In this document: positions 2,203 through 30,780 of the stretch, piece after piece
Layout: each line of letters starts with the position of its first letter
Numbering within the stretch: position 1 is the stretch's first letter
Origin: Octopus bimaculoides
Lineage: Eukaryota
Assembly: GCF_001194135.2 (NCBI RefSeq)
Contig: NC_068981.1
Span: 190,474,655-190,516,992 of the forward strand
DNA: 42,338 bases
Direction: 5' to 3'
The notes under the pieces: model-generated
The model's input: only the letters and a program-made list of their open reading frames with translations
Databases searched by the model: none
Told to the model about the DNA's origin: nothing
Made by a program: the position numbers and the translations under genes

Positions 2203-2470
2203 TAAAGGCGCGTGTCTTAGTGGTTAAGGTGTTCAGTTACGAATTTAAGGTCATGAGTTCGTTTCCCAGCAGCGTGCTGTGTCCTTCAGCAAGACACTTT
2301 ATTTCATGTTGTCCCCATCCTCTCAGCTGGCAAAAACAAGTAATACCTGTATTTCAAACTACCAACTTTGCTGCATTCTGTGTCTCGCTCAATCTCCCTG
2401 AGAACTACATTAAGGGTACACATGTTTGTGGAGTGCTCAGCCACTTGCACGTTAATTTCATGAGCATCGA
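2203..2470 (+). mobile_element. tRNA-derived SINE family B variant (3'-truncated)
   Basis: A/B-box head GGCGCGTGTCTTAGTGGTTAAGG...GAGTTCGTTTCCC, and body GAGAACTACATTAAGGGTACACATG...GTGCTCAGCCACTTGCACGTTAATTTC shared with 24596-24967. Confidence 0.75.
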
Positions 2471-10799: not shown

Positions 10800-11170
10800 A
10801 TACATGATCATCATCACCACCATCGTCATAATCATAGTCATTGTCGTTGAATTTGCTTTAACAGCCAATTCTCTACGCTTGCAAAGGTCGGACAGCATTT
10901 ATCAAGGCAGATCATCTAAGGCTGAATGCCCTCCCTTTCACAAACCAGATACGATATTCCACCACCCACCCACCCTGGCCAGACATGTTCTTTGCAGATC
11001 ATTAGAATCGTTTTACAACTATCACATGTCACACACACACTTACTCATTTCGGTTTTGGCATGGTTTCTATGGCTGGATTCCCTATTTAACTCCAACAAC
11101 TATACAGAGTGTACTGGGTGCTTTTACACAGCACTGGCACATGTGTTTTTTACATGGCACCAGCACCTAC
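10800..11170 (-). mobile_element. Degenerate RTE-LINE 3' end with (GAT)n tail
   Basis: Reverse complement carries GTGCTGGTGCCATGTAAAAAACAC and GAAAGGGAGGGCATTCAG motifs and ends in (GAT)n, as in other RTE 3' ends in the window. Confidence 0.5.
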
Positions 11171-11274
11171 GAGCCTACAAGATTAGGGATGCTCAGCTGG
11201 AGAGGGTTATGAAGTTATTAAGTCTTATGAAGCTAAATTTATAAGTTCTAAAATTGCAGAAGAATTCGTTGCTG

Positions 11275-11346
11275 GGCAGTTTAGTTTAATGGTAAAACAC
11301 TTGGCGCGTAATCACAGAGATGTGAGTTCGAGTCTCATGGCTGGCC
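11275..11346 (+). pseudogene. tRNA-like gene or pseudogene, Thr(CGT)-like anticodon, within cassette copy 1 (about 11235-11500)
   Basis: Cloverleaf: acceptor GGCAGTT/GGCTGGC (1 mismatch), D stem GTTT/AAAC, anticodon arm CTTGG-CGCGTAA-TCACAG (G at position 33, one bulge), T arm GTGAG-TTCGAGT-CTCAT. T6 Pol III terminator at 11356-11361. Confidence 0.6.
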
Positions 11347-11539
11347 AGTAGCGTATTTTTCTGCAATAAATGGATAATTTATTCTGATCACGCTATTTAT
11401 AGCATTATCACGCGTTTGAGAAATAAATTTATTTCTGTTCTTACAATACATCTCAACGCTTCTAAAAAAGAACAAACTTTGTTTGTTTACTTTCATCGTA
11501 AAGTTTTATATATATGCATATATATATATATAAGTTATA

Positions 11540-11810
11540 TATTATCTCCCCTTCTTCCTAGCTCCCCTGTGTGACCCCTCTGTCCGGCATTCGCCATGAT
11601 AGATCACTAGCCAATAAACCTTTTTCTATTTTCTCTCCCTATTTATTTCTGTATTCCTTTCTGTCAAAGAACAAAGGCTCGAACCGTTAACGACTTTCTC
11701 ACTTCCCAAGTGTTAAACTAATACATCTGTTTGTTGTTTACACACCCGTCTTCGTCTTTTGTTGTTTTTTGTTGTTTTTTTTTTGTAAATTCTCACTATA
11801 TGCATATATA
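11540..11810 (+). mobile_element. Penelope-like terminal (pLTR) fragment between (TA)n tracts
   Basis: Degenerate minimal-hammerhead-like segment CTTT-CTGTCAAAGAACAAAGGCTC-GAACCGTTAACG (11657-11692), followed by a T-rich tail ending in TATAT. (TA)n on both sides. Confidence 0.45.
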
Positions 11811-12271
11811 TATATATATATATATATATANNNNNNNNNNNNNNNNNNNNNNNNNNNNNNNNNNNNNNNNNNNNNNNNNNNNNNNNNNNNNNNNNNNNNN
11901 NNNNNNNNNNNNNNNNNNNNNNNNNNNNNNNNNNNNNNNNNNNNNNNNNNNNNNNNNNNNNNNNNNNNNNNNNNNNNNNNNNNNNNNNNNNNNNNNNNNN
12001 NNNNNNNNNNNNNNNNNNNNNNNNNNNNNNNNNNNNNNNNNNNNNNNNNNNNNNNNNNNNNNNNNNNNNNNNNNNNNNNNNNNNNNNNNNNNNNNNNNNN
12101 NNNNNNNNNNNNNNNNNNNNNNNNNNNNNNNNNNNNNNNNNNNNNNNNNNNNNNNNNNNNNNNNNNNNNNNNNNNNNNNNNNNNNNNNNNNNNNNNNNNN
12201 NNNNNNNNNNNNNNNNNNNNNNNNNNNNNNNNNNNNNNNNNNNNNNNNNNACACACACACACACATATACA

Positions 12272-12583
12272 TATGTTTGTTTACATATGACGTAATATAT
12301 ATGACATTTAGTGTTTCTAGATGACATTATAACTTCTAAAATTTCAGAAAAATTTGCTGGTTGGCAGTTTAGCTTAAAGAGTAGAGCAGTCCAACAGATA
12401 TTGGAGGGGTGTGAGTTCGATTCTCATGGATGGTTGGTGGCAATTTTTTCTGCTCTTAAAAGGCTTTTATTCTTTACATATACTGTTCAGTATTTACATG
12501 TGGAAAAATATATCTTTCAACTTGTTCTACAATACATTTCAACACTTCAAAAACAAACTTATGTTTGTTTACATATGATGTAA
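12272..12583 (+). mobile_element. tRNA-like cassette copy 2 with 24-bp direct terminal repeats
   Basis: TATGTTTGTTTACATATGACGTAA (12272-12295) and TATGTTTGTTTACATATGATGTAA (12560-12583). tRNA-like unit at 12363-12435 (D stem GCTT/GAGC, T arm GTGAG/CTCAT). T6 at 12444-12449. Confidence 0.75.
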
Positions 12584-12734
12584 CAAGTAACTATGCACTT
12601 ACATATTTATATATATATATATATCATTTTTAAATTGTTGCACTAGCTAATAATAGAGTCAATGATATCTTTGCAAATATTTTTTTCAGAATTATTTACT
12701 CCATATTGAAAGTATATATATATAAAATATCACC

Positions 12735-12950
12735 CTTTAACATCCATTGTCCATTGGACGGTTTGACTAGACTGGCAAATTGAAAGGCTGTGCCAGGCTC
12801 CAGTATGATTTGGCATGGTTTCCTACAGCTGGACGCCCTTCCTCACGCCAACCACTCCAAGAGTTTAATGGGCACTTTTACATGCCACCAGCACAGGTGC
12901 CATTTGTGTGACACCGGTATCTGCCATGACAATGATTTTGCTCCGCTTGA
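12735..12950 (-). mobile_element. RTE-LINE 3' end fragment
   Basis: Reverse complement: GTGGTTGGCGTGAGGAAGGGCGTCCAGCTGTAGGAAACCATGCC...GGAGCCTGGCACAGCC...GTCAAACCGTCCAA. Confidence 0.75.
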
Positions 12951-12957
12951 TTATACA

Positions 12958-13021
<64 letters not shown>

Positions 13022-13099
13022 AAACTTACTTGGAAAAGGATGCGTGGCGTTCGATCATATAATAATATAAATAATATGCATACATCCATACATATATGT

Positions 13100-13645
13100 A
13101 CATACCTACATCTATATGTATACATGCATGCATATATGGGTACAGGACATAAAAAAACGTTAAACACAATGAGAAACGAAAACATAGAAAACGAACTTTT
13201 TTCAAACAACTCTCTCCTTCTCTTTTTCTTCATCCTATCTGTTCTTCTCTCCCTTTCACTGTTCCCTCTCTCTCTCTCACTCTTCCTCCTTGACTCTCTC
13301 GTTGCTGACACGTGATGAAAGGGGATTGTTCTTATCTGTCCACTTCCTTCCTAAAGAAAAGACATGCCTTTCCTGTCTCCTCGTCTACCTAGTGTTCATA
13401 ATAATGTTTCTATCGTCTTGGCTCAACAGCTCTCACCGTTTGTTTTTACTATCTTGTTCTCACTGTCCTATTCTTGTTAACACTTTCACCCTCGGCAAAA
13501 AATCCCAAATTTTATTTAATTTGTTTTGCGGGAAGGACTGTTTCAACAAAGTCGTGTGTTGTCCTTGCCTTCGAGATGTGGAGTAGATGGAACAGGGACA
13601 ACTGACGAAGGGGTATACTCTTTATGTTGCATGTCTCGTTTCTCG
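13100..13645. mobile_element. Probable Penelope-like terminal region, possibly with an inverted tail
   Basis: Next to (TA)n. Degenerate hammerhead-like GAAAC-A-GTC motif on the minus strand (13532-13572) and a CTGACGA motif near 13603. The 13100-13208 segment resembles the reverse complement of a T-rich PLE tail recalled from memory. The N gap hides the other end. Confidence 0.35.
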
Positions 13646-13722
13646 NNNNNNNNNNNNNNNNNNNNNNNNNNNNNNNNNNNNNNNNNNNNNNNNNNNNNNN
13701 NNNNNNNGGGGGGGGGGGTTGT

Positions 13723-14596
13723 TAAGGTGTGGTAAATAAACAGTCATCTAAATTACGCAAAAATGAAAATAATGCTGATATCTCATTTTAACAGATATAT
13801 TTACCAAAATTACATAAAAATATCTTGAAATACTAAAGAGTAAATTTATTCAATAAAATCGCCATTGGCTTCAACCATGGCCTCCAGACGACTTCAGAAT
13901 CTCCTGTAACCCTTCTGGACTGTCTCCTTGTTTAAGTTGGTCAATGCTGCCATAATCCTTGCCTTCAGTTAATCTTTGGTATTACAAGGAGTTTTGTTGG
14001 TCCCTTGCTCAAATGCAATCCATACATAATAATCAAGGAGGGTGCAGCCTGGAGAGTTAGGTGGCCAGATGTTAGGGGAGATGTGGTCACAGATATTGTC
14101 TGACCGCCAGTGTAGCTTTGTGCAGAGTCCTGTTGGCAGACAAAGGGTCTTCTAGCAGCCACCTGCTTGACCCATGGCAGCACTACCTCCTCCAGGCACT
14201 TAATGTTTGGCCTCCATGTTGAATCTGAGGCTGTGTGGGAAGATGAATGGGGGCATAACATTGCCATCACTAGTGATCACTCCAAACATCATGATGTTGA
14301 CAGGATGTTTGATTTTTATCACTCTCAGTACATATCCTCAGATTGCACTGTCCTCAGATTGATACCCAAACGCTCTGAAATGTTCGTATTGAAGTTTCTG
14401 GTGTGAATGCCAAGCAGTACAGCATGTCAATTCCAAATTTCTGGCACAGTGAATTGCGTCATGGTGTTGTTTTTCTCACAGGCAGTGCCCAACTGACCCT
14501 ACTATGCTGTGTAGTCAACAAAATCGAAAACAAACAAAGCGCATGTGCGAAATTAAAGATATAAAATGGCGACAATTTACCCAGCACACCCTTATA
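13723..14596 (-). mobile_element. Non-autonomous Tc1/mariner-superfamily transposon (mariner/maT-like catalytic C-terminus), internally deleted
   Basis: Minus translation: IKHPVNIMMFGVITSDGNVMPPFIFPHSLRFNMEA/KCLEEVVLPWVKQVAARRPFVCQQDSAQ/SDNICDHISPNIWPPNSPGCTLLDYYVWIAFEQGTNKTPCNTKD*LKARIMAALTNLNKETVQKGYRRF*SRLEAMVEANGDFIE*. Ends resemble TA|AGGGTGTG..GGTAAAT. Confidence 0.9.
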
Positions 14597-14769
14597 CGCG
14601 CGCGCGCGCGCATAGACAGACGCACGCACACACACACACACACACACACGACAGGAGTAAATAGACACCCCATAAAGCATCGTTATTTTATGCTTATTCT
14701 ATAACATGTAAAGATTTATATTTTTTATTAATTGACATTTTTATGTTTCAGGTTCTATATGTGACTGTT

Positions 14770-14940
14770 TAATCCTGCCATGTACAAAAGAAGCCTTGGA
14801 ACTGTGAATTTTAAAGAGGATGTATTGTGGGTCATTCTGAAGGTGGACATAGTCAGTGTAAAATCACAGAAAACTTTGGGATCCCGCTTTCTACTGTTAA
14901 TAGAATGATTGTGTAATTCACCAGAGAGAAGAACCTGGTC
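14770..14940 (+). mobile_element. Tc1-like transposase N-terminal HTH remnant
   Basis: [44 protein letters not shown] resembles Tc1 MPRxKELS...G.S...IA..LGIP.STV..II. Confidence 0.45.
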
Positions 14941-15134
14941 ACTGATCTGCATTCAACTTCCTCCATTATAACACCTGAGTTCACTTCAACATCCATAAAA
15001 TACAAGTGAATACTAGTGGAAAGTTACAATTTACAATGAGACATGTAGAAATATGTATGATTATGCCTGTACTAGTTTTGGTTTCTGCAATAACTGGAAG
15101 TGGATCAGGGGAAATCTTCAATGAACATCTCTCA

Positions 15135-15300
15135 AATATATTCTGAGTTCAAATTCTGTCGAGGTTGACTTTGCCTTTCATCCTTTCAGAGTCGATAAAA
15201 TAAGTACTAGTTATGCACTGGGGTCGTTATAATCGACTAGTCCCCTTCCCCAAAAATTCTCAAGGCCTTGTGCTTTGAGTGGAAATAACTATTATTTCTT
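15135..15300 (+). mobile_element. SINE family C fragment
   Basis: GAGTTCAAATTCTGTCGAGGTTGACTTTGCCTTTCATCCTTTCAGAGTCGATAAAATAAGTAC...CTGGGGTCG. Confidence 0.8.
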
Positions 15301-16250
15301 GAATTGAAATGTGATGAAATGATTGTGGGATAATTTCTAAGTTCCACAAAAAAATCAATTTTTGAAAAATTAGATTTTTAATCTTGGAAAATATAAATTC
15401 TTTGTAAAATTATAATTGCAAAAATGAGAAAATAAGCTAAATTCAAGAATAATGTCATGGAAATAATTTCAACTTGACTCTAGATTTTGTTAGTAAAAAA
15501 AAAATTCAAAAGATTTCTACAAATTAAATTAGGATGATAATGTCTAGGAGGCCATAAAGGGTGATTCCAAATATATTACAGGAATTATTCTGAAATGATT
15601 CTTTCTTGAACATTAAGTTATAACTGACCATAACTGAGAATCTTGACAATTTCATGAGGTTATAACTAAAATTATTCATCCATCAGTTATATTTAATTTC
15701 AAATGACTTAATTCATTATTTAGTGAATGTAATAATGATGATGATGGTGGTGGCGATGGTGGTGGTGGTGGTGGATTTGGTGGTGGTCGTGGTGGTGGTG
15801 GTGGTAGTGGTGGTGGTGGATTTGGTGGTGAAGTAACTAATTTACACTAACATACAGTGTATATACATATGAAAACAAAACGATGCAGTGATATACATGC
15901 ATCTATGTGTGTGTGTGTGTGTGTATGCATGTATTTATGTGTACATGCATGAAGTAAAGTATATACTTACATATGTGTGTGTTTGTGAGTATGTATGTAT
16001 ATATATATATATATNNNNNNNNNNNNNNNNNNNNNNNNNNNNNNNNNNNNNNNNNNNNNNNNNNNNNNNNNNNNNNNNNNNNNNNNNNNNNNNNNNNNNN
16101 NNNNNNNNNNNNNNNNNNNNNNNNNNNNNNNNNNNNNNNNNNNNNNNNNNNNNNNNNNNNNNNNNNNNNNNNNNNNNNNNNNNNNNNNNNNNNNNNNNNN
16201 NNNNNNNNNNNNNNNNNNNNNNNNNNNNNNNNNNNNNNNNNNNNNNNNNN

Positions 16251-16490
16251 CTTGTGCGGGTGGCACATAAAAGACACCATTTCGAGCGTGGCCGTTTTCG
16301 TGCGGGTGACACGTAAAAGCACCCACTACACTCTCTGAGTGGGTGGCGTTAGGAAGGGCATCCAGCTGTAGAAATTCTGCCAAATTAGACTGGAGCCTGG
16401 TGTTGCCATCCGGTTTCACCAGTCCTCAGTCAAATCGTCCAACCCATGCTAGCATGGAAAGCGGACGTTAAACGATGATGATGATGATGA
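16251..16490 (+). mobile_element. RTE-LINE 3' end with (GAT)n tail
   Basis: GTGGCGTTAGGAAGGGCATCCAGCTGTAGAAA...CCAACCCATGCTAGCATGGAAAGCGGACGTTAAACGATGATGAT. Confidence 0.85.
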
Positions 16491-16800
16491 TTATGTCATA
16501 TGTAAAAAAACAACTTTGTTTTTGAAGTGTTGAAATGTATTGTAGAACAAGTAGAAAGATATATTTTTCAACACGTAAATACTGAACAGTATATATAAAG
16601 GATAAAAGCCTTTTAAGAGCAGAAAAAATTGCCACCAACCATCCATGAGGATCGAACTCACACCCCTCCAATATCTGTTGGAGTGCTCTACTCTTTAAGC
16701 TAAACTGCCAACCAACAAATTCTTCTACAATTTTAGAAGTTATAATGTCATCCAGAAACACTAAATGTCATATATATTACGTCATATGTAAACAAACATA
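16491..16800 (-). mobile_element. tRNA-like cassette copy 3 (inverted relative to copy 2)
   Basis: Near-identical reverse complement of 12272-12583. tRNA-like unit at 16637-16709 with arm CTCCAA-CAGATA-TTGGAG. Terminal repeat at 16777-16800 is exact, and the one at 16491-16514 is degenerate. Confidence 0.75.
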
Positions 16801-16802
16801 TA

Positions 16803-16848
<46 letters not shown>

Positions 16849-16851
16849 TAT

Positions 16852-17010
16852 GGTGGCACTTCACTGGCTGTGACGACGAGGGTTTCAGTTAATCTGATCA
16901 ACGGAACAGCCTGCTCGTGAAATTAACGTGCAAGTGGCTGAGCACTCCACAGACATGTGTACCCTTAACGTAGTTCTCGGAGAGATTCAACATGACACAG
17001 AGTGTGACAA
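16852..17010 (-). mobile_element. SINE family B 3' fragment
   Basis: GGCACT..CTGGCTGTGACGACGAGGGTTTCAGTTAATCTGATCAACGGAACAGCCTGCTCGTGAAATTAACGTGCAAGTGG matches the 3' part of 24596-24967. Confidence 0.85.
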
Positions 17011-17643
17011 TCCTTAACTTTTCCTGCCACCCACAAAAACACAACATATTCTTCAGTGATTGCCTATAATCAAAGTCCCTCTAAACTGAAAACTGTGAGT
17101 AGAGTCCCAACAATAAAACCATTTTTGTTTTATTGCTGACATGATGAGAATTTATAAACTTGCAAAAGAACATGAAGTAACTCTTCTTTGGAAAGGTGGT
17201 TCTTAATGGAATGTAGAGGGCTCTGAATAAAAGTAGTGCCTTTGGTGTCTGATAGATGCACCTGGCTAGAACTGGTCAGATGGACAGGTGGACAGTGTTT
17301 GTCTCTCTAATACTTCCCAATGACAATAATCATCCACAATCTAGTATCCACCACTGAGGCAATAGTTAATCAAAATAACTATCTATGTATCATACTTAAT
17401 GTATATACACTGTTGCTAGGCCATTTACTTATCCAGAGATAACATCTCCCATTGACTTGCTGCATGAAGAACAATAAATATTTGAGAGAAACAAAAGTTC
17501 ATTCCACCAGCAACCAGCTACTTTTGGGGCTTTCTCAATGGCTCATGCTCGCAGCCAACCTTATGCTCAGTCACATGCTAGCCTATCGACAGAGTGCATA
17601 CATTAAATTCAAGACATATAAGGTTATATCATCCACAATATTT

Positions 17644-19444: not shown

Positions 19445-19815
19445 TCATTGTCGTGGCACTCTGTCAGTTACGACGACAACCGTTCCAGTTGATCTGATCA
19501 ATGGAACAGCCTGCTCATGAAATTAATGTGCAAGTGGCTGAGCACTCCACAGACACATGTACACTTAATGTAGTTCTCGGAGAGATTCAGCAAGACACAG
19601 TGTGACAAGGCTGGCCCCTTTGAATTACAGGTACAACAGAAACAGGAAGAAAGAGTGAGAGAAAGTTGTGGTGAAGGAGTACAGCAGGGTTTGCCACCAC
19701 CCCTTGCCAGAGCCTCATGGAGCTTTAAGTATTTTTGCTCAATAAACACTCATAATGTCTGGTCTGGAAAATGAAACCGCGATCCTATGACCGCAAGTCT
19801 GCTGCCCTAATGATG
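19445..19815 (-). mobile_element. SINE family B, near full length
   Basis: Same layout as 24596-24967, including the head ...GCGGTCATAGGATCGCGGTTTC. Confidence 0.85.
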
Positions 19816-22559: not shown

Positions 22560-22790
22560 CTATGCTGTGTAATGCGCTGCTGATGCCATGCAAAATGCAC
22601 CACATAAAAAGCACCCAATACACTCTATAAAGTGGTCGGCAGTAGGAAGGGCATCCAACCATGGAAACCTGCCGAAATAGATGACTGGAGCCTGGTGCAG
22701 CACTCTGGTTCATCAGCTCCAGTCAAACCATCCAACCCATGCCAGAATGGAAAGTGGTCACCAAATGATGATGATGATGATGATGTGGTA
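22560..22790 (+). mobile_element. RTE-LINE 3' end with (GAT)n tail
   Basis: AGGAAGGGCATCCAACC...GGAGCCTGGTGCAGC...GTCAAACCATCCAACCCATGCCAG...AAATGATGATGAT. Confidence 0.8.
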
Positions 22791-22929
22791 GAAGATGCCA
22801 GGCTGTACTCATTTGCATATGATAATGAGGTTATTGAATAAACATGGTAAACATTTACAACTGTCTCATGCATCTAGTAATTTTGGTGCATTTATCTTAA
22901 TGAATTTACAAACACACCAATGGCTAAAA

Positions 22930-23695
22930 CTTATGGATAATTCCCATAATAAACCTATGGAGGATAATCCCCATAATAAACCTATGGATAATCCCTATAA
23001 TAAACCTATGGATAATCCCCATGATAAACCTATGAATAATCCTCATAATAAACCTATGGATAATCCCCATGATAAACCTATGGATAATCTCCATAATAAA
23101 CCTATGGATAATCCCCATGATAAACCTATGTATAATCCTCATAATAAACCTATGGATAATCCTCATAATAAACCTATGGATAATCCCCATAATAAACCTA
23201 TGGTGGATAATCCCCATAATAAACCTATGGATAATCCCCATAATAAACCTATGGATAATCCCCATGATAAACCTATGGATAATCCTCATAATAAACCTAT
23301 GGATAATCCCCATGATAAACCTATGGATAATTNNNNNNNNNNNNNNNNNNNNNNNNNNNNNNNNNNNNNNNNNNNNNNNNNNNNNNNNNNNNNNNNNNNN
23401 NNNNNNNNNNNNNNNNNNNNNNNNNNNNNNNNNNNNNNNNNNNNNNNNNNNNNNNNNNNNNNNNNNNNNNNNNNNNNNNNNNNNNNNNNNNNNNNCCATA
23501 ATAAACCTATGGATAATCCCCATAATAAACCTATGGATAATCCCCATGATAAACCTATGGATAATCCTCATAATAAACCTATGGATAATCCCCATGATAA
23601 ACCTATGGATAATTCCCATAATAAACCTATGGATAATCCCCATGATAAACCTATGTATAATCCTCATAATAAACCTATGGATAATCCCCATAGTA
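22930..23695. repeat. 24-bp minisatellite (CATAATAAACCTATGGATAATCCC)n spanning a gap
   Basis: About 25 units are visible around an N gap. Variants AAT/GAT and CCC/CCT, plus two 3-bp insertions. Confidence 0.95.
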
Positions 23696-23714
23696 AACAT
23701 CAACTTTTACTTTT

Positions 23715-24085
23715 TATTTTTCGTTTCAGTCATTTGCACTACAACCATGCTGGAGCACTATCTTGAAGGGCTTAGAGAAAAAAATTGACCCTACTACTTA
23801 TTTCTAAGTCTAATACTTACTTTATAGAACACTTTTGGTGAATTGCTAAGTTATGGAGACATAAACAAACCAACACTGGTCGTCAAATATTGGCAAGCGA
23901 CAAACACAAAGACACACATAGGCATACATAAATAGATATATAGTCATATGACAGGCTTCCACACAGTTTCTGTTTATGAAATTCATTCACACGGCTTTGG
24001 TCAATCTCGGAATATAGTAGCAGACAAATGCCCAAGGAGCCATGCAGTGGGACTGAACCTCAAACCACATGCTTGCAAAACCAAA
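23715..24085 (-). mobile_element. SINE family A (older copy)
   Basis: Reverse complement has head GTGGTTAAGATGTTTGG...GGTTCAGTCCCACTGCATGGC and the family A 3' module. Confidence 0.8.
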
Positions 24086-24595: not shown

Positions 24596-24967
24596 GTTGT
24601 TGGCACTCCGTCGCTTACGACGTCGAGGGTTCCAGTTGATCCGATCAACGGAACAGCCTTCTCGTGAAATTAACGTGCACTCCACAGACACGTGTACCCT
24701 TAACGTAGTTCTCGGGGATATTCAGCGTGACACAGTGTGACAAGGCTGACCCTTTGAACTACAGGCACAACAGAAACAGGAAGTAAGAGTGAGAGAATGT
24801 TGTGGTGGAAGAGTACAGCAGGGTTCGTCACCATCCCCTGCCGGAGCCTCGTGGAGCATTTGGTGTTTTCGCTCAATAAAGACTCACAACGCTCGGTCCG
24901 GGAATCGAAACCACGGTCCTATGACCGCGAGTTCGCTGCCCTAACCACTGGGCCATTGCGCCTACGC
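24596..24967 (-). mobile_element. SINE family B, full length, with 12-bp target-site duplication
   Basis: tRNA(Arg)-like head GGCGCAATGGCCCAGTGGTTAGGGCAGCGAACTCGCGGTCATAGG...TTCGATTCCC and (AAC)n tail. TSD AACAAAAGGGTT at 24584-24595 and 24968-24979. Confidence 0.92.
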
Positions 24968-26485: not shown

Positions 26486-26504
26486 CATGTATCGTCATAG
26501 TCGT

Positions 26505-26895
26505 TATCGTCATTTAACGTCCACTTTCCATGCTGGTATGGGTTGGACGGTTTGACTGAGGACTGGTGAGCCAGAAGGCTGCTCCAGGCTCCAATCTGAT
26601 CTGGCAGAGTTTCTACAGCTGGATGCCCTTCCTAATGCCAACCACTCAGAGTGTGTAGTGGATGCTTTTACGTGCCACCAGCACAAGGCCTAGTCAGGTG
26701 GTACTGGCAACGGCCAAGATCAAATGGTGTTTTTTAAGTGCCACCTGCATGGTAGCCAGATTGGCAGCACTGGCAACGTTGTTTTTCACATGCCACCGGC
26801 ACATGTGCCCTTCCTAACGCTAACCACTCCGAGAGTGTAGTGGGTGCTTTTTATGTGCCACTAGCACGAGGGCCAGTCAGGCAGCACTGGCATAT
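26505..26895 (-). mobile_element. RTE-LINE 3' UTR with internal repeats
   Basis: Reverse complement of the GAT-tailed module, with several GTGCCACC.GCAC sub-repeats. Confidence 0.8.
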
Positions 26896-29088: not shown

Positions 29089-30140
29089 TGATGATGATGA
29101 TTTCACTTATTTGTCACAAGGGTGAAGGATGAGGAGGACAATACAAACACAGACATAAAATATTGGGGTTTACAAATAATGAAATGATAAGAAAATAAAA
29201 AAAGAAAGAAGGTATACATGATATATACTGAAAAAGAAGGGACATATGCATAGTATATAAAGGTTTAAATAAAAAGGGGTGACGAGGATGATAGAGATGT
29301 GGCCCTCCTAATACAGGAAGGCCTCTAGGGATAATCGAGGAATCCCATTGTCAGATTTCCCTGAAACCCCAAGCGCAAGTGCCCTCTCCAATTTTTTCTC
29401 TCCAACTCACAGGTCTACACTTAGAGAGGTACCATCCACTCTTGCCATTTTCCCAACTTTCATCCACCTTTTAATAAACTCACTCGAAGACAGCACTTCC
29501 CTCTCAATTTCCTTTCCAAGTGAAACTTGAAGAAGTCAATGAGAGGAAGGTATCTGTCCTCATGCCTTTCATCTTTGTCCATCAAACAATCTCTTTCACC
29601 ACAGTCACCAGGCAAAGGAAAGCTGCCTTTCCTGCCCAATTGAAGGAGGGTGGTGGTGCAATCATCACTATAGACTTGGCCAACAGACAATTCCACCCCA
29701 CATGTAACAGTAGCTGTTTGACATAACCCCACAAGTCAGCAATGCCCGGACACTGACCAAGGGCATGCAGAATGGTTTCATCATTCTGCAAACACCTTGG
29801 ACAAGCCCATCTGACAGCACATCCATGCCTGTAGAGTTTATCTCGAACTGGTAGCATCCCCCAGTAGCTTCCAGGCCAAGAACATCTGGAAATTATCCAT
29901 GGTAGTTCCTAACTGAAAAGTCCTCCAGAACAGACCAGCCAGTTTGTTCTTGCCGGCACCCAGAATCTCTCCGAGCATGATGTCACACTTCCCCAGCATT
30001 AATCCTCTATAAATCTCTAAAGCAGAACATCCACTGATCCCATTGCCCAACTGGTAGAGGGCTGTGAGCATCTGATGACACTTTAGGTGCCAGGTGCCCA
30101 GTCTTGGCCGTTTCTTCACCCAGGACCGCAGCTCCATCAA
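29035..30140 (-). mobile_element. L1/Tx1-like LINE, 5'-truncated, with C-terminal zinc finger, 3' UTR and (ATC)/(ATT) tail
   Basis: LPVRDKLYRHG..CPRCLQNDETILHALGQCPGIADLW is the CxxC...ET..H....C zinc-finger-like C-terminus of L1/Tx1 ORF2. The frame ends KMARVDGTSLSVDL*. The 3' UTR ends AAATAAGTGAA-(ATC)n(ATT)n. Confidence 0.8.
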
Positions 30141-30339
30141 GGAAATGATGATAATAATAATAAGGTAAGAAAAAAGTTTAAATTGAAATTTAATGGTGTA
30201 AATAGTATCTCTGTTATTAACTCCAGTGCTCAAAGCATGATAAGGTATGCAGGTGGTGTAGTCTAATGAACGAAGGATGACCTAAAGATCTTGGTGACAA
30301 AGACCAGAAAATTATTAATCATATGTATGGTATATATGC

Positions 30340-30780
30340 TGTGCTTGAGGAGACCTGGCAAGTCAAGTGAGATCATAACCGTGGCCTATGCCAGTGCAGC
30401 ATAACCAGCCCATTTAAGAGTATGCTTCAATCATTGGGCAATAAACTGTGCTTGCGAAAACCTGTTGAGGCAAGTGAAGTCATTGTCATGGCTGATGCCA
30501 GTACTGCCTGACTGGTTCCTGTGCTGGTGGCACGTAAAAAGCACCATTTGAGCGTGGTTGATGCCAGTACCACCTGACTGGCCCTCGTGCTGGTGGCACG
30601 TAAAAAGCACCCACTACACTATTGAAGTGATTGGCATTAGGAAGGGCATCCAGCTGTAGAAACTTTGCCAGATCAGATTGGAGCCTAGTGCAGCCTCCTG
30701 GCTTGCCAGTCCTCGGTCAAACTGTCCAACCCATGCCAGCTTGGAAAGCGGATGTTAAACGATGATGATGAGGAGGAGGA
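30340..30780 (+). mobile_element. RTE-LINE 3' end (ORF stop, 3' UTR with two internal repeats, GAT tail)
   Basis: GCTGTGCTTGAGGAGACCTGGCAAGTCAAGTGA (AVLEETWQVK*), then two GATGCCAGTAC..CCTGACTGG..C.TGTGCTGGTGGCACGTAAAAAGCACC units and a GAT tail. Confidence 0.88.

Follow-up and report, generated by a model that had tools for sequence, protein, structure and literature searches.

What is a tRNA-like unit that occurs three times in a short piece of octopus DNA, and how were its copies made? The question is raised by a stretch of 42,338 nucleotides from Octopus bimaculoides (contig NC_068981.1, positions 190,474,655 to 190,516,992), here called the window, in which an earlier note, made from the sequence alone, had described three cassettes carrying a tRNA-gene-like transcription unit for RNA polymerase III (Pol III). 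We put the probability at about one half that, as judged from sequence, the cassettes form a small family of Pol III units that derive from a tRNA and were duplicated at the DNA level; such a family would be a relic mini-cluster or a lineage-specific group of small-RNA genes. Nothing yet raises the cassettes above a locally duplicated tRNA-derived Pol III unit.

Three cassette copies within 5.6 kb

Searches with blastn and nhmmer revealed exactly three copies of the cassette in the resolved sequence of the window, all located within 5.6 kb of one another (Table 1). Together with alignments these searches confirmed the places given in the earlier note as well as the common sequence upstream and downstream of the tRNA-like unit. 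Each copy has a TATA-like block, an A box, a B box, a run of five or six T (T5/T6) and a common downstream sequence; copy 1 consists of the TATA-like block, the tRNA-like core, T5 and about 150 nt of this downstream sequence. Copies 2 and 3, with blastn extents of 12257-12583 (plus strand) and 16815-16496 (minus strand), are 94% identical over about 320 nt and differ at 21 of 318 columns (6.6% pairwise). Their homology spans from (CA)n to ...ATGAYRTAA; the earlier note, too, let both copies begin at a (CA)n tract. Identity of copy 1, which blastn aligns from 11239 to 11490 or 11545, to copies 2 and 3 is 69-71% according to this program and 65% if gaps are scored as mismatches.

Within the window and four other loci that were scanned, the upstream string, the distal block TACAATACATYTCAACRCTTC and the contexts of A box, B box and T run are confined to the three cassettes, and all motifs listed in the earlier note turned out to be present and unique to the cassettes within this scope. 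The other ~33 kb of resolved window sequence contain no further copy, and neither do 77 kb of other loci, of which about 31 kb are resolved Octopus sequence. These loci were sampled via a transposase-like fragment and comprise 20.5 kb from O. bimaculoides (about half of it gaps), 20.3 kb from O. vulgaris and 36.6 kb from a more distant European Nucleotide Archive assembly; locus L001 belongs to GCA_001194135.2 and locus L003 to GCA_951406725.2. Metagenome, prokaryote-genome and viral collections, when scanned for patterns, gave 0 matches, but they contain no octopus DNA, so this result is uninformative. A full-text literature search with sequence strings of the cassettes found no paper.

The window contains 12 assembly gaps, and L001 is likewise gap-rich. 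One gap (11831-12250) lies between a (TA)n tract and the (AC)n tract opening copy 2, and the distance of 1088 bp between copies 1 and 2 is an estimate only. A second gap (16015-16250) removes the 5′ part of a short interspersed element (SINE) beside copy 3 and is 240 nt away from this copy. With copy 2 abutting a gap and copy 3 so close to another, copies 2 and 3 could be one locus or allele placed twice by the assembly. Nevertheless such an artefact is scarcely credible, because a difference at 21 of 318 columns is far above the allelic or error level and the flanks of the two copies differ. Furthermore, copy 1 is a third, much older copy in uninterrupted sequence. There is no gap inside any cassette, and both within-copy spacings of 288 bp, which are described below, lie in uninterrupted sequence.

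Conservation of promoter and terminator regions

Homology between the old copy and the young copies begins 36 nt upstream of the tRNA-like 5′ end. The best-conserved stretch between copy 1 and copies 2 and 3 extends from −36 to +4, with 35 of 40 positions identical, and the upstream block contains an identical run of 21 nt (11246-11266; permutation p=0.005). This region starts with the TATA-like block TTATAAGTTCTAAAAT, a predicted promoter element by comparison with the −31/−24 boxes of type 2 Pol III genes (PMC7279448). Other conserved blocks are the A box (16/20), the B box (17/20), TTTTTCTGC and the distal block (15/20). Conservation is heterogeneous, being centred on the promoter and terminator blocks (block variance p=0.01). 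In addition an octamer resembling a cAMP response element (CRE), TGACGTAA, was identified about 70 nt upstream of the core, within the 5′ terminal repeat of copy 2 (12288-12295, plus strand) and copy 3 (16784-16777, minus strand). The corresponding position of the 3′ repeat reads TGATGTAA in copy 2 and TGACATAA in copy 3, and no counterpart was seen upstream of copy 1.

The upstream block lies outside any Pol III transcript that begins at the tRNA-like 5′ end, and copying must thus have occurred as DNA or via a longer transcript. The view that the cassettes are not canonical SINEs is supported by this block, since it is common to old and young copies and is their best-conserved part. The earlier note had also argued from an immediate terminator, a T6 within about 10 nt of the unit. 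T5 or T6 does directly follow the tRNA-like head, but T6 is found in copies 2 and 3 only and T5 in copy 1. The argument is weaker than had been claimed, for in the cassettes the T run is followed by CT and is itself an arm of an inverted repeat. CT after a T run is reported to weaken Pol III termination, favouring read-through, and is also seen past internal T runs in mollusc SINEs (PMC4758252).

Ordinary tRNA-derived SINEs would have to have been read through at the T run and inserted into a pre-existing repeat. The cassettes resemble the octopus OK, OR1 and OR2, the Vhc and the Snail SINEs in their tRNA-like head, which contains A and B boxes, in an internal T run with C or CT after it, and in their association with (CA)n-type repeats (PMC4758252). 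An A-rich CAAAAACAAAC is present near the 3′ end, (TA)n follows copies 1 and 2, and octopus genomes are rich in tRNA-derived SINEs, at least according to the citations of Ohshima and Okada (1994) in PMC4758252 and PMC4824008. It is nevertheless very improbable that the cassettes are such elements. Unlike in mollusc SINEs, homology extends at least 36 nt upstream of the head, and exactly these 36 nt are best conserved between old and young copies. Further runs of T4 or longer occur in the body of copy 2, and no individual, variable target-site duplications were seen. While genuine SINE families recur 5-11 times in the window and L003, the cassette recurs locally only.

Decay of the tRNA-like cores

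The cores are tRNA-derived sequences with a decayed cloverleaf, not working tRNA genes. The Rfam model RF00005 matched copy 1 over its full length with 32.8 bits (cut-off 29), and copies 2 and 3 gave local matches under the cut-off (Table 1); no other tRNA-like match was obtained in the whole window at E≤0.5. ARAGORN in default settings found no tRNA in any cassette. With relaxed thresholds it proposed a Thr(CGT)-like cloverleaf with an anticodon stem of 3 bp for copy 1, and, for copies 2 and 3, cloverleaves whose anticodon loop has 6 nt and whose acceptor stem consists mostly of G-U pairs. In these two copies the anticodon stem has 5-6 bp, and the acceptor is mostly G-U paired or mismatched. 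The D-arm and T-arm are still tRNA-like, the A box TTTAGYTTAA.G and the B box GAGTTCGANYCTC are present, and the T5/T6 run lies 7-10 nt past the core (T5 at 11356-11360 in copy 1). When compared to dinucleotide shuffles, the 73-74-nt cores fold no better (z −0.12 for copy 1, +0.50 and −0.50 for the other two), and their minimum-energy folds are not cloverleaves. A functional cytoplasmic tRNA gene was rejected, as copies 2 and 3 are under the Rfam cut-off, ARAGORN finds none by default and the anticodon arms are non-canonical.

According to the earlier note the structure is under selection while the anticodon arm varies. This is not supported: the cores fold like shuffles, and the acceptor and anticodon stems are degraded. 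A swapped anticodon arm could not be recognized as a distinct segment either, since the identity of 6 out of 18 positions in the anticodon-arm window is no outlier against the 65% background (permutation p=0.3) and one downstream window is equally diverged. The arm of copy 1 had been called self-complementary, but CTTGG/TCACAG forms 3 of 5-6 pairs, and Rfam pairs only 2. Covariation of the stems was recovered in part. Between copy 1 and copies 2 and 3 the D stem (T-A to C-G), the anticodon arm and the outer helix described below each show a single compensatory pair, and the stems one wobble change in addition. The T stem never varies and is hence uninformative, and with two independent lineages the evidence for covariation is thin.

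An open reading frame (ORF) of 90 or 97 amino acids runs through copy 2 (12311-12583, plus strand) and copy 3 (16468-16761, minus strand), including the tRNA-like core, and is broken in copy 1. Searches of 5.8 billion clustered and 1.8 billion representative proteins found no relatives; Pfam gave no domain, and a word-indexed protein search found nothing. An exhaustive HMMER search yielded two repetitive, unrelated proteins only, with a score made up of many repeated short matches. Exact look-up of ten ORFs of the window gave no match, an outcome that the handling of stop and start codons may have affected. The 90/97-aa ORF is a spurious chance frame.

An inverted repeat joins the promoter and terminator regions

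The conserved upstream sequence GCAGAAGAATTYG pairs with the T-run-bearing CRWATTTTT(T)CTGC, the two being the arms of an inverted repeat around the core. This helix between promoter and terminator regions was missed in the earlier note and is new here. The inverted repeat of copy 1 comprises 27 nt with 81% Watson-Crick pairs, or 25 of 27 pairs if G-T is counted. Folding of 11250-11370 resulted in −48.6 kcal/mol compared to −27.2 for shuffles (z −6.2), and for 11270-11352, which excludes the leader, z was −1.8. Copies 2 and 3 keep the outer 13 bp. In copy 2 this outer stem has 12 of 13 Watson-Crick pairs and appears in both the minimum-free-energy and the centroid fold. The inner helix of copies 2 and 3 has decayed, and neither of them folds better than shuffles (z −0.24 and −1.18). 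Taking the three copies together, pairing is seen in 84% of the cells of the leader/trailer helix, as against 36-54% for slid controls over the whole structure, a comparison that is biased because the structure used for counting was derived from copy 1.

Functional lineage-specific small-RNA genes in a local cluster, giving rise to panhandle Pol III RNAs of a vault-, 4.5S- or VA-like kind or to a Dicer substrate, would account for several of these features. The TATA-like block, the A and B boxes and the T run are kept at a background identity of 65%, the terminal helix of copy 1 is long (z −6.2), and copies 2 and 3 retain the outer portion of it with one compensatory pair. Three paralogues with a variable centre likewise recall vault RNAs, which are defined by the same features and are often clustered (PMC8824774), and the CRE-like octamer of copies 2 and 3 has a parallel in the CREB sites that matter in 4.5S flanks (PMC7279448). 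We still regard this explanation as decidedly unlikely. No Rfam match to Vault (RF00006), Y RNA or any other family was obtained at E≤10, although RF00006 includes a mollusc according to PMC8824774, and the motif TTACTTCG past box A is absent. Even when the outer stem is counted in, copies 2 and 3 do not fold better than shuffles, and half of the long helix is upstream of any start expected from the TATA-like block or the A box.

Vault RNA genes are Pol III units of 80-150 nt with boxes A and B, a variable centre, a 5′/3′ panhandle, a T run and a few clustered paralogues (PMC8824774). The cassettes resemble this layout, except that a panhandle was observed in copy 1 whereas copies 2 and 3 lack a convincing one. 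Unlike vault RNA, their D-arm and T-arm are tRNA-like, and past box A copy 1 reads GTAAAACACTTGG and copy 2 GTAGAGCAGTCC. Vault RNA by homology was rejected because neither an RF00006 match nor TTACTTCG past box A is present.

A wider proposal is that of an undescribed cephalopod Pol III mini-gene family, in which promoter, terminator and panhandle would be maintained while the cloverleaf decays, and which could be a new class of small RNAs of about 90-105 nt, akin to vault, 4.5S or VA RNA or a Dicer substrate, or a discrete DNA unit of about 290 bp that spreads and has terminal redundancy. We consider this unlikely.

Terminal repeats and ends of the unit

The 24-mer TATGTTTGTTTACATATGAYGTAA occurs at 12272, 12560 and 16777 (minus strand), with 0 occurrences expected by chance. 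The direct terminal repeat of 288-bp period that had been noticed in copies 2 and 3 is thus real, and in copy 2 its two ends agree at 23 of 24 positions, but the 3′ repeat of copy 3 agrees at merely 20 of 24. The downstream sequence of copy 1 ends in a degenerate terminal repeat, CTTTGTTTGTTTACTTTCATCGTAA (11477-11501). No significant homology to the 5′ 60 nt of copy 2 was detected upstream of 11239 in copy 1, even when the comparison was extended across the neighbouring SINE (p 0.29-0.65). The 5′ terminal repeat is documented in the lineage of copies 2 and 3 alone and therefore counts as a single event, not as repeated evidence for a replication mechanism. A hairpin, AAACAAAC-TTAT-GTTTGTTT, overlaps the 3′ terminal repeat (12551-12570 in copy 2) and is also present in copy 1.

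No copy-specific target-site duplication was seen; the 5′ flank of copy 2 is a gap, and the flanks of copy 3 are a SINE tail and a microsatellite. Terminal inverted repeats are absent from the unit ends, the sole long inverted repeat being the internal one around the core. Tandem arrays, which the earlier note had advised looking for, do not occur in the window: Tandem Repeats Finder (TRF) detected no array with a period near 288 and each locus corresponds to 1.08 units, although the gap at 11831-12250 could hide more.

The ends of the unit suggest a dispersed, non-autonomous mobile element of about 290-325 bp that carries a Pol III mini-gene and moves as DNA or via a longer transcript, an idea that goes back to the earlier note. 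Its terminal redundancy might stem from a tandem or circular intermediate, or the element might be a microsatellite-targeting retroposon on the opposite strand with a (TG)n tail. The unit is discrete from (CA)n to ...ATGAYRTAA, the hairpin at its 3′ end overlaps a terminal direct repeat that is nearly perfect in copy 2, both young copies border (CA)n, a tail type common in mollusc SINEs (PMC4758252), and copy 3 fits exactly between an older SINE tail and a microsatellite. Such an element is possible but on the unlikely side, for the three copies are confined to 5.6 kb, and about 110 kb of other sequence contain no further one. Copy 1 has no significant 5′ repeat, no copy-specific target-site duplications were seen, and the ends of copies 2 and 3 count once as the product of one duplication event. 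Terminal inverted repeats, a TG..CA unit with a 4-5-bp duplication, a primer-binding site, a polypurine tract and Helitron ends are all lacking, and the ORF of the cassette has no relatives in protein collections that include Octopus annotations.

Several described element classes fail on at least one defining feature. The long terminal repeats (LTRs) of the TRIMp3 elements (Helenus, Cassandra, Ajax) harbour a Pol III unit derived from a tRNA or from 5S, and among molluscs such elements are known in bivalves (PMC10886601). Like the cassettes, they have a central tRNA-like Pol III unit with common sequence to its left and right, in a repeat that measures a few hundred bp, and short terminal redundancy occurs in the TRIMp3 class. 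In the cassettes, by contrast, no primer-binding site and polypurine tract framed by two LTRs and no 4-5-bp target-site duplication are present. A TRIMp3/Helenus element was rejected: copies 1 and 2 have the same orientation, but with 69% identity they are far too diverged to be the LTR pair of a single element, copy 1 is not followed by a TGG-type primer-binding site, and copy 2 is preceded by (AC)n and a gap. LTR ends of the form TGTTTG...TTTACA are possible, but their flanks, CATA/TATG in copy 2 and TATA/TATG in copy 3, are common to the copies. A retrozyme was dismissed, as no hammerhead or other ribozyme family matched at E≤10 in 10800-17200, as was a miniature inverted-repeat transposable element, the unit ends being direct repeats without terminal inverted repeats. 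A Helitron (no Helitron ends on the unit) and a tandem tRNA array or satellite (no 288-bp-period array by TRF, 1.08 units per locus) were also discarded.

The junction of copy 3 and points against local duplication

Several observations weigh against a mere local duplication of DNA. At its 3′ end copy 3 stops precisely where the terminal repeat does, directly beside the (GAT)n tail of a SINE, and it lies exactly between this older tail and the compound microsatellite (TG)n(TA)n(CA)n. The SINE end is well defined, as ten other copies from the window and L003 align up to 16483-16504, mostly to 16490/16491. The abutting SINE differs by 10.5% from its family consensus, as compared to 6.6% pairwise between copies 2 and 3 (about 3% per branch); copy 3, or an ancestor copy at this site, probably arrived after the SINE, a relative dating that rests on a crude consensus and the assumption of equal rates. 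The junction has the appearance of a genuine end of a discrete unit and is more insertion-like than a random segmental duplication; it is the best argument for a copy-and-paste event. Copies 2 and 3 are 3.9 kb apart in opposite orientation, and their homology is limited to the unit of about 325 bp. The terminal repeats of copy 2 are 23/24 identical despite the old age of the family. Furthermore, the sample of about 110 kb could reveal only families of very high copy number, from tens of thousands to the order of 10^5 copies, and constraint is thinly supported, as there are only two independent lineages (copy 1; copies 2 and 3).

The compound microsatellite bordering copy 3 (16801-16852) is a perfect hairpin. 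Sub-threshold Rfam matches to microRNAs (mir-297, mir-466 and others) originate from this tract and from other (TA)n/(CA)n tracts of the window and are spurious. A copy of a second SINE-like family starts at 16855, directly past the microsatellite.

Positions of features and other repeats in the window

Table 1. Cassette copies, their parts and SINE-like repeats in the window. Ranges on the minus strand are written from their 5′ end where the larger number comes first.
Feature	Position	Strand	Remarks
Cassette copy 1	11239..11506	+	blastn, nhmmer, alignments; old paralogue
Copy 1, TATA-like block	11239..11254	+	−36 to −21 from tRNA-like 5′ end; block kept in all three copies
Copy 1, tRNA-like core	11275..11346	+	Rfam RF00005 full length; A box ~11282-11292, B box ~11324-11336
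Copy 1, inverted repeat, 5′ arm	11253..11279	+	ATTGCAGAAGAATTCGTTGCTGGGCAG; inverted-repeat search, RNA fold
Copy 1, inverted repeat, 3′ arm	11341..11367	+	CTGGCCAGTAGCGTATTTTTCTGCAAT; contains T5 11356-11360; inverted-repeat search, RNA fold
(AC)7.5 tract, 5′ edge of copy 2	12251..12265	+	directly after gap 11831-12250; TRF, sequence
Cassette copy 2	12266..12583	+	blastn, nhmmer; (AC)n edge from 12251
Copy 2, 5′ terminal repeat	12272-12295	+	
Copy 2, TATA-like block	12327-12342	+	TTATAA 12327-12332
Copy 2, core	12363-12436	+	
Copy 2, Rfam tRNA local match	12370-12427	+	20.6 bits, under cut-off 29
Copy 2, T6	12444-12449	+	
Copy 2, inverted repeat, 5′ arm	12345..12357	+	CAGAAAAATTTGC; 13 nt, 92% complementary
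Copy 2, inverted repeat, 3′ arm	12440-12452	+	GCAATTTTTTCTG; includes T6
Copy 2, 3′ terminal repeat	12560-12583	+	
Cassette copy 3	16491..16815	-	includes (CA)n edge; 94% identical to copy 2
Copy 3, 5′ terminal repeat	16800-16777	-	
Copy 3, TATA-like block	16745-16730	-	
Copy 3, core	16709-16636	-	
Copy 3, Rfam tRNA local match	16702-16645	-	23.6 bits, under cut-off 29
Copy 3, inverted-repeat arms	16728-16716 and 16631-16619	-	
Copy 3, T6	16628-16623	-	A6 on plus strand
Copy 3, 3′ terminal repeat	16513-16490	-	
Unrelated SINE copy	16298..16490	+	(GAT)n tail; abuts 3′ end of copy 3, outside cassette; end fixed by ten other copies
Abundant SINE-like family	11055-11145, 12754-12900, 16298-16490, 22607-22784, 26495-26684, 30585-30777, 36996-37185, 41993-42167		
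Second SINE-like family	16855-17010, 19455-19608, 24604-24743, 2374-2466 (-)		begins GGTGGCAC

Abundant among the repeats are SINE-like elements of a family with about 190 nt aligned and a (GAT)n tail (16474-16490 in the copy beside copy 3), of which the window contains at least 8 copies with 77-88% pairwise identity and L003 further ones. A copy of this kind is located beside each cassette, but at differing distances and with an identity below that of the cassettes, and thus these SINE-like copies represent independent insertions. Altogether the window shares several repeat families with L001 and L003 at 78-89% identity.

Transposase-like repeat remnants with frameshifts and stops were found at 13724-14592 (minus strand), 34111-34520 and 35430-35609 (plus strand). 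They resemble 'uncharacterized' proteins of O. bimaculoides and O. vulgaris as well as copies in the loci L001-L004 (72-85% nucleotide identity) and have no Pfam match; by motif resemblance alone they may be of the Tc1/mariner type. A decayed fragment of a non-LTR retrotransposon (29460-30233, minus strand) is indicated by a match to Pfam zf-RVT (E 8e-9) that is split over two frames. A 24-nt minisatellite (22900-23720) reads as an open frame, with DNPHNKPM repeated, across the gap at 23333-23495, and is probably a non-coding repeat. The G10 run at 13708-13717, at the right edge of the gap 13646-13707, looks like an artefact of sequencing or of a contig end, and no continuity was detectable between the sequences to either side of the gap.

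Origin of the cassettes and their relation to known systems

Under the reading that we favour, duplication of a tRNA-derived Pol III unit at the DNA level, the three units would descend from one tRNA gene, Thr(CGT)-like in copy 1. Copying would have taken place at the DNA level and included flanking sequence, about 36-110 nt on the 5′ side and about 150 nt on the 3′ side. One old duplication would have separated copy 1 from the rest (~65-70% identity), and one recent inverted duplication would have given copies 2 and 3 (94% identity), with the 24-bp terminal repeat arising once, in the common ancestor of these two. If still transcribed, the units would yield non-tRNA RNAs of about 85-105 nt with ends able to pair. 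The outcome would be either a relic mini-cluster of tRNA pseudogenes or a lineage-specific small-RNA gene family of the 4.5SI/4.5SH type. By analogy, the pattern of similarity in the 5′ flank, the A and B boxes, the T run and the end-pairing matches a type 2 Pol III unit whose RNA would no longer be a tRNA.

We know of no counterpart of the long leader/trailer helix in the rodent 4.5SI and 4.5SH genes. In their mode, but not by homology, these genes are the closest working analogues of the cassettes. They are SINE- or tRNA-related type 2 genes with conserved 5′ flanks, which contain TATA-like and CREB sites, and were amplified together with these flanks (PMC7279448). Internal A and B boxes, a TATA-like box near −30, a CREB-type site and a T-run terminator are found in both, and in both amplification would have proceeded as DNA with flanks, as local or tandem paralogues and not by retroposition (PMC7279448). 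Unlike in the 4.5S genes, the terminal stem of copies 2 and 3 is badly degraded; there is no sequence relation between the two groups.

Local duplication of a tRNA-type unit is also known from tRNA genes themselves. Clusters of tRNA genes and of pseudogenes have been surveyed (PMC2888827), and for tRNA-Cys of Arabidopsis PMC10701932 describes repeating units of 0.4 kb that each hold a tRNA gene. As in such clusters, a tRNA-type unit with its flanks was duplicated locally in units of a few hundred bp, and the paralogues diverged. The cassettes differ from them by forming no head-to-tail array, by having one inverted copy and by two of three cores being under the Rfam cut-off.

If the cassettes are a relic cluster, they would provide a worked example of a tRNA-like match that is neither a tRNA nor a SINE, and annotation of tRNAs and repeats in cephalopods should flag such cases. 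Should they belong to a dispersed family, their terminal redundancy, together with the precise junction of copy 3, would make them a candidate for an unusual spread at the DNA level. If they are transcribed, they would represent a lineage-specific family of Pol III small RNAs born from a tRNA gene, and would show which parts of a type 2 gene, namely 5′ flank, boxes, terminator and end-pairing, are kept after decoding has been lost.

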